NCBI GenBank assembly: GCA_037447605.1
Contig: CM074823.1
Span: 1,054,001-1,118,000, forward strand
Source: Zygnema circumcarinatum SAG 698-1b
Taxonomy: Eukaryota; Plantae; Zygnematophyceae
Reading direction: 5' to 3'
Length of the DNA stretch: 64,000 nt
Program-made: the position numbers and the translations under genes
Part shown: positions 6,882 to 52,800 of the stretch, piece by piece
Layout: every line of letters begins with the position of its first letter
How positions within the stretch are numbered: the stretch's first letter is position 1
The notes under the pieces: model-generated
Told to the model about the DNA's origin: nothing
Databases searched by the model: none
The model's input: only the letters and a program-made list of their open reading frames with translations

Positions 6882-9800
6882 ATGGCGCGAGGAGGCACTT
6901 TCACCTTAAGCCTTTTCTTCGCCCTCTGTTCAGTGGTGCTTTCGGCGGCGGCCAAAAAGGACCTCTGCGCTCCGTTCGTGAACACGAATGAGACGACGTT
7001 CTCGGCTGACGTCGTGCGGAGTTGCTTCGGTCAGATTCCGTACAATGCTGACGTGGCGGCGAGCATGGTGGACTCCCTGAAGAAGGCGCTCGCCTTCATG
7101 CCGAGCGTCGACGTGGCGCTGAACTCTCCCACGAAGGAGCTCCCCCTCAAGGTCGACATTCGGAAGACCCTCACCGACATCGGCAAGAAGCAGTACAAGA
7201 GCGACCTGGAATTCAACAATGCGCTGCGTACTGCTTTCGATTCCCTGCGCGACCAGAACGTGGGGTACACGTCCTACTGTTACCCCTTCACCTCCGAGAT
7301 CGCGTTTCCGCTCGTTCTCTTCTGGAAGGACGGGCAGCCCGTCGTGCAGATCCGCCCGTCGTACAGTGAGCGCCGCCCCATCCCCTTCTTGCTCGCAGAT
7401 GTTTTGGCAATCTTGCCTTCTCAGGGTTTGGAAGTCGAAAAAAAATTGACATTCTAGAGTCTCGGTTTGGGTTGGATGTGTCCTGCTTTCCTTTTCATGA
7501 ATTGGAAGGGAGTCCTCGTATATAAATGCCATTCCTATCTCCTTTGGCTTTCGGAAGCTAGTCTCTTTCTCCCATTCCCTCTCTCTCCCTCTCACTCTCT
7601 ACTATAACCTCACATACACATGTCGACAGTTGTTATGATTTTTTTTCGTGCATGGCGGTTCTCAACATGCATGCATTCATGCTCATGTTGTTGTTGTCGT
7701 TGTTATTCATGCTCATGTTGTTGTTGTTGTTCATGTTGTTCTTGCTTTGCAGGCTCCCCGTCCGTGTACAACAAGACCTCGCTGAAGCTGAAGAAGGATC
7801 TGAGCCTCTTCGAATCCGCCGCGGTGGAGACCATCGAAGGCGTGCCCGCGTACGACTACCTTTTGTCCTTTGCGAACACGACGCAGGGCGGCTTCAAGGA
7901 CGTCAACGCGCGCCTCAACTCTCTCTTTGTCCGCCCGACCAATCTGTTCTCACAATCCGACGTATACCCATTTTACAGTGGAGGCTTTTCCTCTCGTCCT
8001 TATCTTGTGGAGAATGCCACGTTATCCATGCAAATCAGGAGGTGAGTACAAATTTTAATACGGTGATAGGGAGTGGAGCTAAAAGAAACAAATTGTCAGT
8101 GGCTTTTATAGAAATTGCGTGAGTTAAGTTTGAGCCGTACATATATTTGACAGGAAAGGGAGTTGGTTGAAGCTCTGTTACAATTTTTTGATGAAGTATG
8201 TACTTTCGAGCCCTTGACTTCCGTCAAGCAAATGCACGATACAAGCACTTTCCTCTTTTCGGTTCTTTGTTCTGTCATCACTCCTCAACTCCATACTGAA
8301 CGCTCATTGCGAGGTTGTTCTGCTGCCGTTATTCTGCTGCAGAGTGGGGCAAGCCAAGTCGGAGAAGCTCTCAGCTCCGTGGTACACAACTTTTCCTTAC
8401 GGTCCAATCTTCGACGATATCACGAGTTACTATAGATATAACTGCATCAACTCTCAGTTTTATGGTGGAGATTACGATTCTTCTAAAAGCTTATCGGATC
8501 GAAAGAGTGTATTCGACGATTCCTCTCGACAGCCAGAAGCGGACCCAATGGCAGGCTCCCAGCAGCCGGCTCTGACTGCAAAGAGCAAGAGCATGACTGG
8601 TGCTGAGCAACTCGTTGATGGAGTTGTTAGTGTAAGTGACCCCATTATATTGTTTCTATCCATGCATATCGATTGCTATGGATCTCCGTCTCTCCCTCTC
8701 CATTCGCCCTTCTCTTATTCTCTTACCATTCTTTCGCTATTTCTCCTCGTACCGACTGAAAACGTTCTTTCGTTGGATTCCCCACCTCCTTAATCTGAAT
8801 CTTTCTGGCTGTTACCCAGTGCTTCCCCTCCAGTCCCTCACCGTCTCCACCCCGCCACTTATCATATCTCTCTCTCACACACCTGCACTATTCGCCTGCC
8901 TTCTGATGCCCTACCCTCTCCCTCTATCTGTGTCCCTCGAACAATCCAAGGGTGTGCGCGCTGTGGCATAGTCCAATGCAATCCTCGCAAAACGATACAC
9001 GATTTTCTTACATGTACTCGTTTGAATGTGATGTCTGTGCATGCAGGCATGGCTTCTGCCGGACAACAAAACAGGAGTCCTTGTTATACCCGATTTCGGG
9101 CGGCGTACCTATTTCGATGAGTGGTACCCGAGCCTTGTTCTGAGCTTGGTCACATTGAAGTAAGCGTTTCGATTCTCCCCTTGTCCAATTGGCACTGTAA
9201 ACAGGTTTTTCAGCATGGCACATTTGACGTGATTGCATTGTCTAGTCACTCTATTACCCATCAATTCCAGAGAGCACAGAATTCGTATATGTCTCAAGCC
9301 AATGAAACCCTAACTCCATCTATTTGACGTACGTCCAGACGAGCTGCGAATCAAATCATCATCGACGTGGCTGACGCATCCGGCGGGTATTCGAGTCGAG
9401 TTGACGATCTCATTCAGTTCTTGTTCCCCTCTCTCACTTTCACTGCGTATCCGAGCGAGTTCAGAGCGACACGTCTCGCCAAACTAACTGTGAAGGCCGC
9501 CGTGAACGCAAACAAAACATACGGCTTATACGACTACAGTGCATATAGCGACTTGAATGGCCTGCCACTGACAGAGAAGAACTTCTTCTTTCCAGTCGTA
9601 TCTAAGACCTTCAACGGGAAGAAGGCGGATTATTCGAAGCAGTTGACTGTGTTCTATAAGTCCAATATTTTTCAGCCATCCAACCTAAAACCGCTTTTCA
9701 AGGCTGACGATATTCTTATCCTCACCAATGGCTTGTGCTACGAGAGGTGCGCGGAATTCATCTTCAAGGCGCAGGTACGTTGATCCCTTTATGTAGATCA

Positions 9801-49838: not shown

Positions 49839-52800
49839 TCAAGCAAAGTACTGCGCCGCCTTCGCCCAGGTGGCAGGCCTGTCCAGGACCGTCTCGGCCG
49901 CGTGGTCAAAGCGGTAATTCGCGGCCTTGAAGACGAAGTCCGCGGGAATCGCAGAGCTCGCCTTGCAGTACGACTGGAGGATGGGGAAGGTAAAGCTGGC
50001 GATGACAGGAAGAGGCGGAGGGGCGTCCTTGTCAGTGAGTAAGTTGACGTCAATTAACTCAAACCTGAGGGAGTCGATGTTATAGTTGAGGCCAACGACG
50101 CCTCCTCCGACGGCCATCGGCTTTTGGGGAATACCTCCCACAGCGACACTTTTCACTCCCGTAAATTCCTGCATACAAAGCTTGAGAAAATGAGGCATGG
50201 AGTTGAAAACAGAGCACAAGAGCGAGGGGAAGGAGAGAGAGGGAGGCAGAGGAAGGGGGAGACGGAAGGCAGAAAAGGGAGATGGCAAAGATCTACATGA
50301 AGGGATGAACATACCTGCAACTTGAAGATGAACTCCGCACAGTTGTCGTTGCACAAACCATTGGTGAGGATGATGATTTCGTTAGCCTTGAAAAGCGGTT
50401 TCCCAATGGACGGCTGGGAAATTTGAGACTTCGCGAAATACGTCAACTGCTTCGAATAATCCGCCTTCTTCCCGTTGAAGGTCTTCGATACGACCGGAAA
50501 GAAGAAGGTATCATTTGTGAATGGCAGGCCATTTAGGTCGGTCCAGATACGGTAGTCAAAGATGCTGCCAGATGTATAGTTGAGCTCCGAAACGGCTTCA
50601 GCAGTTAGTTTGGCGAGACGTGTCGCTCTGAACTCGCTCGGATACGCAGTGAAAGTGAGAGAGGGGAACAAGAACTGAATGAGATCGTCGGCGAGACCCG
50701 GATACCCGCCGGCATTATCAGTCACGTCGATGATGATTCGATTCACAACTCGTCTGAACAACAACAAGTACATCGGGATAGGGTTAAGGTTAGGGTAAGG
50801 ATTAGGGTGAGGGTTAGGGTTAGGGTTAGGGTTAGGGTTAGGGTTAGGGTTAGGGTTAGGGTTGGTGAGGGTGAGGGTGAGGGTGAGGGTGAGGGTGAGG
50901 GTTAGGGTTAGGGTGAGGATTCGTCGTGCTCTCCGTAACCGAAGGAAAGGAATGTTGGACAAGAGACGATGCTTTCATCATAATTTGAATGCGCCATGTG
51001 AAAGGAAGTAAGATTTCACAATTGAAATTGGACATAAAGAGGATGAAAATTGGCTTACTTCAAAGCGATCAAGCTTAGAACAACGCTCCGGTACCACTCA
51101 AAGTAAATGACATCCCCCCCAAAGCTGGGCATAACGAGAACTCCGGTTTTGTTATCCGGAAGCAGCCATGCCTGCATCCATAAAACAGGACATTTTCCAG
51201 GAGTTCATGTAAAAATCGTTCGTGCATAAGATTTTTATTTCAGTAGACGTTGAACAACGGCAGAAAAAGCTCTATGGGCGATACGGAGAGCAGAAGACGG
51301 ATGAACCAGGAAGGATTGGCTTCTACAGAGTGCGAGTGTGGAAAAAATTAAGGGAATAGAAGAGGAAAAGAATACTGGGAGAGGGCACAAGGGGGAATAT
51401 CGCAAAAGACTTAAAATGAAGCAAGATTGAGAGACGGGGAAGGTAGGATTTTTGTCGGCAATAGGTCAAGAAGCGAAAGAAAAACAAGGGAAAATGGAGA
51501 GTGGAGAGAGAGATAGAGAGAGGAGAGAGAGAGAGAGAGAGAGAGAGAGAGAGAGAGAGAGGAGAGAGAGAGAGGAGAGAGAGAGATTCTCATAACGGGC
51601 AAGCGTGAATAGAAAGCAAAGCAGCAGTGTTGCTTACAGTGATGAATCCGTCAGAGAGGAGCTGAGCACCATCCAATTTTGTGCTTGTTGGGGCCACGGC
51701 AGACTGAAGGGGTTCAGACATTCCTTCGGCTTCTGGCAGTCGAGAGCGATCTTCGAATACACTCTTTCTCTCCGAAAGGGTTTTAGGAGAGGAGGGAGGT
51801 TCATAAGGCTCATCATAAGTGTAAGTAGCATTGCAGCTCCTCGCGTAGTAACTCTTCAGATCGTCGAAGTATAAACCGTACTGGAAAGTGGTGTACCACG
51901 GAGCTGATAGCTTTTCGGAATTCCTCTGCCCCACTCTGCAGTATAATGCCAACACAACAATTTTAGGGTTTTAAGGGTTTTTAGAGTTTTCATGATCGTG
52001 CAGATAGATTTTTTTTTTTTTTTTTTTTTTTTTAGGGTTTCTAGAGTCTTTAGGGTTTTTATGCATTCTAACGATTGACGGATGTTGAAAACCAAGCACG
52101 AATCAATGCGCCTGTGAACTATGTATGCATCATTTAAGCTTGAACCCAATGGATGCAAATTCGGAGAACCTCTCACAATCCCTTTATGTTGTGTGCCAAA
52201 TTCAAGTTAAACTCTACCTCTTTATTTGCATGGATATCGTGGCACTATCCACGAGATAAGGGCGAGAGGAGAAGGCTCCGCTTAAGGGCGTGGTGGAAAA
52301 AGAATAGCGATCTGAAAAGCGATTGGTCGGACGGGCAAAGAGGGAGTTGAGGCGCGCGTTGACGTCCTTGAAGCCGCCCTGCGTCGTGTTCGCAAAGGAC
52401 AAAAGGTAGTCGTACGCGGGCACGCCTTCGATGGTCTCCACCGCGGCGGATTCGAAGAGGCTCAGATCCTTCTTCAGCTTCAGCGAAGTCTTGTTGTACA
52501 CGGACGGGGAGCCTGCAAGGCGACAACAGCAACAACAACATGAGCATGAATAAAAACAACAACAACAACAACATGCGCATGAATAACAACGACAACAACA
52601 ACATGAGCATGAATAACAACAACAACAACAAGGGTATGGATGTATGCAGGTTGAGAACCGTGATGCACCAACAACAATCACCACAACGTAGTCTCAAGCA
52701 AGACTTGGGGACATGTGTGTGTGTGAGGGCAAGAGGGAGAGAGAGGGAGAGAGAGAGAGGGAGAGAGAGAGAGAGAGAGAGAGAAATATAGCAAAATATT

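Follow-up and report, generated by a model that had tools for sequence, protein, structure and literature searches.

Short, non-reciprocal gene conversion between paralogs homogenises the conserved parts of clustered gene families, while islands of divergence persist (PMC10919680). It has been described for plant RPP8 nucleotide-binding leucine-rich-repeat (NLR) paralogs (10.1101/694240), for GOT1 paralogs of Tigriopus (PMC3728101) and for Caenorhabditis paralogs (PMC3966223). In families of this kind, tracts are exchanged between tandem and inverted paralogs, the mosaic copies fit no single tree and new combinations of segments arise as a by-product. Here we analyse a cluster of eight paralogous genes (c1–c8) that shares these properties and that lies in a window of 64,000 nt of the streptophyte alga Zygnema circumcarinatum SAG 698-1b (CM074823.1, positions 1,054,001–1,118,000; assembly GCA_037447605.1; all positions given below are window-based). 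The cluster differs from the described families in the host, in the gene concerned, which appears to be a dead homolog of the CPAF-like S41 peptidases, and in a very sharp contrast in the proportion of synonymous differences (pS), 0.009 versus 0.51.

Mosaic genes are also produced by programmed cassette systems, such as trypanosome VSG, Borrelia vlsE, Neisseria pilE/pilS and the chicken immunoglobulin pseudo-V genes, in which paralogous donor segments are likewise copied into a gene to yield mosaic variants. Such systems combine a single expression site with silent donors, and their exchange is limited to variable cassettes and takes place during the life of the organism. A preliminary description of the Zygnema cluster, made from the letters of the DNA, had proposed that variable cassettes are shuffled between the paralogs, including across opposite strands, by segmental gene conversion. 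Our analysis favours, with a probability of about 0.7, a simpler reading in which seven of the eight paralogs (all but c4) are in concerted evolution by ordinary interlocus (ectopic) gene conversion.

Results

Conflicting groupings along the gene

Self-comparison of the 64-kb window revealed eight copies of a unit of 3.4–5.3 kb, and no additional fragments were found beyond them; c1, c2, c3 and c4 lie on the forward strand and c5, c6, c7 and c8 on the reverse strand, with the convergent c4 and c5 both inside one contig. The gene model, whose splice sites were taken from the seven-copy DNA alignment, consists of six exons with a product of ~666 aa, and the model based on c3 is colinear with full-length relatives, among them P0002, P0005 and proteins from Netrium and Mesotaenium. 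All introns are of the GT-AG type and the reading frames are open in c1, c3, c6 and c7 (665–668 aa). Copies with an assembled 5′ end (c1, c3, c4, c6, c7 and c8) have their own start codon and, judged by eye, a signal peptide.

Exon-by-exon translations of all copies gave conflicting partitions in the variable segments (V1–V5), showing that the closest-relative pairs change along the gene as had been proposed, and each of the motifs quoted in the preliminary description is present exactly where it had been placed (Table 1). In V2, FDDITSYY occurs in c1, c3 and c5, FQYGLYF in c7 and c8, and YCVNS and GPYSSSK in c2 and c6, while the adjoining linker QKLPVTAK is found in c5 and c7 only. V4 groups c5 with c7 and c3 with c6 in the exon-wise alignments. 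The end of V5 reads PVRINLEF in c1, c2, c3 and c7, and PVFAS or PVIAS in c5, c6 and c8. Copy c7 by itself has four different partners along the gene. The proposed identity of c2 and c3 in V5 holds as a sequence match, but the V5 that had been attributed to c2 lies on a different contig from V1–V4 of that copy. Painting each copy by its nearest relative showed that the partner switches every few dozen polymorphic sites against a background of (c1, c2, c3) versus (c5, c6, c7), with c8 outside.

The partners in V1 and V2 across the two arms of the cluster (c1/c7, c2/c6 and c3/c5) are mirror-symmetric about c4. An old inverted duplication of a three-gene array was considered as the main cause of the conflicting groupings and was rejected, as the symmetry is absent from flanks and introns and the tract shared by c1 and c7 is far younger than its surroundings.

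Tests of exchange between the copies

The pairwise homoplasy index (PHI) test was significant (z = −8.7 to −12.6, p < 0.001), and remained so (p < 0.0005) on introns alone (z = −4.0) and on exons alone (z = −7.4). Approximately unbiased (AU) tests were carried out with six copies, all 105 unrooted topologies and 11 segments. None of the 105 topologies was accepted by all 11 segments, and most cross-tests gave p < 0.01; the per-segment trees are incongruent, in agreement with the earlier view that no single tree fits the pairings. A chimera test by topology relabelling was uninformative, with six taxa and two tree shapes, and distance spectra were used instead.

Individual tracts were sought with a GENECONV-type run test in which polymorphic sites were permuted, c8 was left out for the gene body and a Bonferroni correction was applied. 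This check, which the preliminary description had called for, returned eight significant pairs after correction: c1/c7, c3/c7, c6/c7, c5/c6, c1/c2, c2/c3, c1/c3 and c5/c8. The shared tracts measure ~20–270 bp and stand between otherwise diverged copies. The best single conversion tract is the one shared by c1 and c7, which spans 236 bp between polymorphic sites and 265 bp of exact identity, the longest exact run of any pair, while the introns that flank it are 17–18% diverged between the same two copies. Variable segments are carried by some of the tracts, namely V1 by the c1/c7 tract and the end of V5 by tracts of c3/c7 and c5/c8. Exchange across opposite strands is significant for pairs with c7 only, and the orientation of c7 with respect to c1 and c3 hangs on unverified scaffold joins.

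These results bear on a reading without any exchange, in which the copies diverged along a single tree, the conserved tracts were kept by constraint, and convergence or chance produced the resemblances in the variable segments. Variable loops can gather homoplasy and the segments are short. However, PHI is robust to rate heterogeneity and is significant on introns alone, the identical tracts cover multiple sites and are significant after correction, the AU tests reject every single tree, and the framework synonymous sites are free to change, as described below. Provided that the assembly is correct, a history without exchange is rejected, and we regard it overall as extremely improbable.

Homogenisation of the framework and GC bias

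Divergence among the copies alternates along the gene between near zero and high. Approximately 164 framework codons, about one quarter of the total, show pS = 0.009 and a proportion of nonsynonymous differences (pN) of 0.002 among the seven copies, whereas the same codons show pS = 0.51 and pN = 0.19 in comparison with c4, the old divergent paralog that serves as an unconverted control. Synonymous sites in the framework are thus free to change, and the seven copies must have become identical there recently. This contrast in codon comparisons indicates homogenisation rather than constraint as the source of the framework identity.

The tracts identical in all copies reach 95 bp at most and extend even to c8, the oldest of the homogenised copies. 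Introns 2–4 of c8 are 43–54% diverged from those of all others, compared with 19–25% for introns 1 and 5 and 8–13% for exons 1, 2 and 6. Homogenisation of exons through cDNA was considered and rejected, as the identical tracts extend into the last 6–17 nt of intron 1.

The homogenised codons also differ in base composition. The consensus GC content at third codon positions (GC3) is 0.81 in the framework and 0.64 in the other codons (Fisher p = 4e-5). When the family was compared with c4, framework codons with GC in the family and AT in c4 outnumbered the reverse by 31 to 11 (p = 0.003), whereas the other codons were balanced (88 versus 89). This excess is the mark that GC-biased gene conversion would be expected to leave. 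It resembles GC-biased gene conversion described between duplicated genes, where letter-identical tracts of old duplicates coincide with raised GC; here the comparison involves seven copies, and GC was measured at third codon positions against the unconverted c4.

Selection on the variable segments

The variable segments have pS values of 0.2–0.4, similar to the divergence of the introns. Their ratios of nonsynonymous to synonymous change (dN/dS) are 0.46 for V1, 1.02 for V2, 0.98 for the linker, 1.05 for V3, 0.36 for V4 and 0.83 for V5. The one exception among the seven segments is an 8-codon patch of exon 4, with dN/dS of 3.4 and pN exceeding pS in 18 of 21 pairs, against a range of 0.36–1.05 in the other six. 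When placed on the predicted structure of the relative P0002, V1, the end of V2 with the linker, and the exon 4 patch map to low-confidence loops (residues 242–258, 312–353 and 391–396). On this model, the variable segments resemble loops that tolerate change and have escaped homogenisation, rather than cassettes under demonstrated diversifying selection.

Two parts of the preliminary description are not supported by these comparisons. Exchange is not specific to cassettes, since introns are mosaic too, as seen from PHI on introns alone, and the dominant effect is homogenisation. Nor did we find that shuffling was selected to build combinatorial variants, as dN/dS lies at ~0.4–1.0 in the variable segments and exceeds 1 only in the 8-codon patch.

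The same data weigh on the possibility that selection has shaped the cluster into a repertoire of recognition proteins, in which conversion recombines hypervariable surface cassettes, and that it corresponds in an alga to the resistance-gene or receptor clusters of plants. Several variable segments are indeed framed by invariant tracts, and the grouping of the copies differs from one such segment to the next. Some of the shared tracts include a variable segment, and dN/dS is high in the exon 4 patch, as given above. Moreover, the proteins are predicted from their sequence to be secreted and to have lost catalysis, frames are open in at least four copies, and an LRR-EGF gene lies inside the cluster. 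Against this, none of V1, V2, the linker, V3, V4 and V5 bears a sign of positive selection (dN/dS 0.36–1.05), introns are as mosaic as exons, the position of the variable segments on low-confidence loops of the P0002 model fits relaxed constraint, the copies are not arranged as an expression site with silent donors, and three of the eight are either damaged or incomplete. We therefore consider a selected recognition repertoire unlikely. Less likely still is an extended form of it, a germline-diversified repertoire of catalysis-free, secreted S41-fold binders or decoys, acting against microbial proteins or in cell–cell recognition, with loops recombined by maintained conversion between direct and inverted copies; together with the embedded LRR-EGF gene, it would represent an early equivalent, among streptophytes, of the immune-receptor clusters of plants.

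Relationship to CPAF-like S41 proteins

Database searches were run exon by exon, and exons were joined only in local scripts for codon statistics and for local tblastn against the window. The open reading frame of c1 exon 2 matches the CPAF-like PDZ domain PF23658 of Pfam (E = 4.7e-9, 36.7 bits, cut-off 27). No direct match to PF03572 (Peptidase S41) was found in the Pfam search of the exons, but exons 5 and 6 align over their full length to relatives that bear this domain (tblastn E = 4.5e-19 and 1.9e-9 to P0002; phmmer E = 2.9e-14 to P0001), and the relatives carry PF23658 together with PF03572. An exhaustive search with c1 exon 5 returned eight relatives at identities of at most 38%; proteins of Z. 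circumcarinatum itself were not found in the collections searched with this exon, where the best match was 38% identical. The full-length relatives, at 30–38% identity, include P0002 (678 aa) and proteins of Netrium digitus and Mesotaenium endlicherianum, and a word search with P0002 added four fungal proteins.

A direct sequence search of PDB with P0002 gave no meaningful match, and a profile of the relatives reached tail-specific proteases, CtpB, IRBP and CPAF in the same database. The AlphaFold (AF2) model of P0002, which is ~33% identical to the window protein, has a predicted local distance difference test score (pLDDT) of 75.7 and a predicted template-modelling score (pTM) of 0.80, and its best match is CPAF (Foldseek to 3dja_A, E = 1.5e-12, template-modelling (TM) score 0.61), the fold being known from this relative only. 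The domain order of CPAF and of the fungal CPAF-like S41 peptidases, with an N-terminal domain, a PDZ-like domain and a C-terminal S41 domain, would be shared by the window proteins; PF23658 falls on exon 2, and the modelled relative P0002 matches CPAF structures.

Unlike CPAF, every readable copy in the window has both catalytic residues replaced. The column of the nearly invariant catalytic serine (G-x-C-x-S-x-C-A) holds Glu in c1, c3, c4 and c6 and Asp in c8 when exon 5 is aligned with six relatives, all six of which keep Ser; translations of c5 and c7 also show Glu, and this part of c2 is unread. Where the N-terminal domain should hold the catalytic histidine of D-G-H, Asn is found instead: the relatives read DGHT, the window copies DQNV and c4 DKNV. 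A further difference is the NNGGG motif, which reads ADASGG or similar in the window copies. By domain and relatives, the proteins would belong to the CPAF-like S41 family, while both tests of the catalytic residues came out negative. The signal-peptide-like N-terminus (by eye), the replacement of both catalytic residues and the S41 relatives lead us to predict that they are secreted S41-fold pseudo-proteases of the CPAF-like branch. IRBP (retinol-binding protein 3) provides a parallel as a secreted, non-catalytic S41-fold protein that binds rather than cuts and that the relatives matched in both profile and fold searches; it is without a specific sequence relationship to the algal proteins.

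Assembly gaps and condition of the copies

Six gaps of 10 N lie within the 64 kb, and the contigs measure 1–17 kb (Table 1). At the first and the last gap, the two flanks are exact reverse complements of each other (5357–5526 and 48842–49011). These inverted-repeat flanks look like fold-back contig ends and not biology. Copies c1–c5 are tied together within contigs or by shared gene structure across gaps, and the orientation of the contigs holding c6 and c7 and holding c8 relative to c1–c5 is given by scaffolding alone.

Exon 1 of c2 is absent and the copy starts in the middle of exon 2 at 11133. Its gap in exon 5 falls where the remaining copies are identical, and the 170 nt on the 3′ side of the gap are non-homologous and out of frame, so that c2 is not continuous across the gap. 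The homology assigned to c2 restarts at 13003 with a 426-bp piece that comprises the last part of intron 5, exon 6 and 44 nt of flanking sequence. The piece shares 99% identity with c3 (18706–19128; 4 differences in 423 bp, with an exact run of 177 bp), has unique flanks on both sides and carries an acceptor AG mutated to AA. It could be a recent fragment duplication instead of the 3′ end of c2. Exon 1 of c5 has an additional C in a C-run near 30498, and across its gap the sequence is of the CT-rich upstream type. In c8, exon 1 meets a TAA in an A-run before the usual donor (52960–53010), with an in-phase GTGAGC 60 nt upstream that might rescue the exon. Both the TAA of c8 and the extra C of c5 could be real lesions or homopolymer sequencing errors.

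This state of the assembly raises the question of whether the mosaic is mostly an artefact, produced by a short-read assembler that switched between paralogs, collapsed near-identical tracts or filled gaps with reads of other copies. The six gaps and short contigs, the two gaps with fold-back inverted-repeat flanks, and the contig ends at 12823 (c2 exon 5) and 30627 (c5 exon 1), which lie exactly within shared exon tracts, fit this explanation. However, path switching only relabels segments, and it cannot yield zero differences over 265 bp between c1 and c7 when the closest pairs in the adjoining introns differ by 5–7%. Nor can it remove an outlier such as c8, with one copy at 43–54% in introns 2–4 and none above 25% in introns 1 and 5. 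The tracts common to all copies (≤95 bp) and the longest pairwise run (265 bp) are within reach of reads and read pairs, the shared segments are often similar rather than identical, as in old exchange (V2 of c2 and c6; the c2 fragment and c3, 4 in 423 bp), and the GC3 asymmetry relative to c4 is a biological footprint. We judge a mosaic made mostly by the assembler to be quite unlikely.

CT-rich microsatellites of 0.3–1.2 kb stop a few nucleotides 5′ of the start codon in c1 (6374–6868), c3 (14554–15708) and c7 (46635–47170), the repeat type ahead of c1 and c3 being (CTCTCC)n, and a kindred CT-rich array (20510–20789) lies ~180 nt upstream of c4. The 5′ untranslated region or promoter of these genes is essentially a GA/CT repeat. 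Introns of c4 contain CCCTAAAA-type runs (22667–22854 and 23838–24066), and its intron 5 contains (TCTA) × ~221 (24681–25566). Intron 4 of c8 has telomere-like CCCTAA/CCCTCA runs at about 50810–50920, and a 15-nt array containing TTAGGG is located at 61082–61667. Between c5 and c6 lies the LRR-EGF gene (33099–36835), inside which an exon-plus-intron tandem repeat of 200 bp occurs in 3.8 copies (35408–36158).

Table 1 Gene copies, variable segments, shared tracts and assembly gaps in the window (c3 coordinates of V segments are approximate).
Feature	Position	Strand	Remarks
c1, intact six-exon gene, 666 aa	6882–10244	+	projected from c3 model; GT-AG introns, open frame
c1 exons	6882–7425, 7753–8041, 8343–8631, 9047–9159, 9339–9774, 9915–10244	+	projection from c3
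c2 left part, 5′-truncated, mid exon 2 to assembly gap in exon 5	11133–12823	+	blastn and tblastn against c3; alignment at gap
Isolated exon 6 fragment (c2 3′ end of the preliminary description)	13003–13428; exon 6 at 13055–13384	+	99% identical to c3
c3, reference model, 668 aa	15714–19084	+	splice sites from seven-copy alignment; colinear with P0002 and P0005; open frame
c3 exons	15714–16257, 16572–16866, 17169–17457, 17870–17982, 18180–18615, 18755–19084	+	seven-copy alignment
c4, old divergent paralog, not homogenised, unconverted control	20971–26258	+	~50–67% aa identity
c5, exons 2–6 intact, exon 1 cut by gap	27496–30627	−	gap at 30628
c6, intact, 665 aa	39122–42551	−	open frame
c7, intact, 668 aa	43247–46615	−	open frame
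c8, oldest member of homogenised group	49839–53507	−	intron versus exon divergence
SQSDVYPFY (V1)	c1 7950–7976; c7 45555–45581	c1 +; c7 −	motif search
11-residue V1 motif	c3 16769–16801; c5 29816–29848	c3 +; c5 −	motif search
V1 (c3)	16754–16804	+	groups {c1,c7}, {c3,c5}, c6, c2, c8
V2 and linker (c3)	17212–17410	+	V2 {c2,c6}, {c1,c3,c5}, {c7,c8}; linker {c5,c7} versus {c1,c2,c3,c6}
V5 (c3)	18824–18934	+	first part {c2,c3}, {c1,c8}; last part {c1,c2,c3,c7} versus {c5,c6,c8}
c1/c7 identical tract, 265 bp, carries V1	c1 7747–8011; c7 45520–45784	c1 +	run test p = 0.0006, Bonferroni 0.006
c3/c7 tract, V5 end, 23 bp	c3 18912–18934; c7 43397–43419		run test
c5/c8 tract, V5 end	c5 27668–27701; c8 50011–50044		run test
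Longest tract identical in six aligned copies (c1, c3, c5–c8; c2 without this part), exon 2 framework (c3)	16598–16692	+	pS about 0 even versus c8
Further tracts of this kind (c3)	16002–16047, 18271–18327, 18445–18488, 18965–19023	+	
Assembly gap	5437–5446		flanks exact inverted repeats
Assembly gap	12824–12833		inside c2 exon 5
Assembly gap	23323–23332		microsatellite in c4 intron 3; frame untouched
Assembly gap	30628–30637		first ~91 codons of c5 exon 1 cut off
Assembly gap	31762–31771		intergenic
Assembly gap	48922–48931		intergenic; flanks exact inverted repeats

Discussion

The proposal that segmental gene conversion builds combinatorial variants can be separated into two parts. Conversion is borne out by the incongruent trees, the significant tracts, the contrast in pS and the elevated GC3, while purposeful shuffling is not. 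Under the favoured reading of ordinary interlocus conversion, breaks in one copy would be repaired from a paralog, and exchange would begin and end preferentially in conserved exonic tracts, because no other part of the gene is similar enough. The conserved framework tracts may thus provide the homology that seeds exchange, and the earlier suggestion that they act as homology arms is plausible. Mismatch repair in the heteroduplex would be GC-biased. Introns and loop-coding segments, being too diverged or too free to vary, would persist as unhomogenised islands that are sometimes carried along with a tract, and the divergence of introns and loops would keep tracts short. The apparent shuffling of cassettes would then be a by-product of conversion and not the work of a dedicated diversity generator.

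Several points weigh against this reading. The linkage of segments within each copy comes from one assembly, with contigs of 1–17 kb that are broken inside repeated exons. The shared tracts give neither the direction nor the age of single events. In c8, the all-copy-identical tracts of 44–95 bp stand between segments diverged by 30–50%, and the proposed mechanism does not explain them. Finally, damage or missing parts affect c2, c5 and c8.

The cluster is not a programmed cassette system, because it is without an expression site and silent donors, exchange extends beyond the cassettes and no positive selection was shown. Unlike in such systems, c1, c3, c4, c6 and c7 are complete genes, c8 has its own ATG and signal peptide but a stop in exon 1, and only c2 is a fragment; introns join the exchange here, and nothing suggests a programme.

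As an instance of gene conversion, the cluster is clear but not unusual. It offers, in a streptophyte alga, a clean and quantifiable case of concerted evolution that carries a footprint of GC bias, and whole-gene alignments of this family, and of similar clusters in the genome, are unusable for building trees, assigning orthology and dating. The family, so far unstudied, comprises secreted CPAF-like S41 homologs, as predicted here, in which both catalytic residues are replaced and at least four copies keep an open frame. Were population data to reveal diversifying or balancing selection on the variable loops, the cluster would be a candidate for a recognition system in algae related to land plants.

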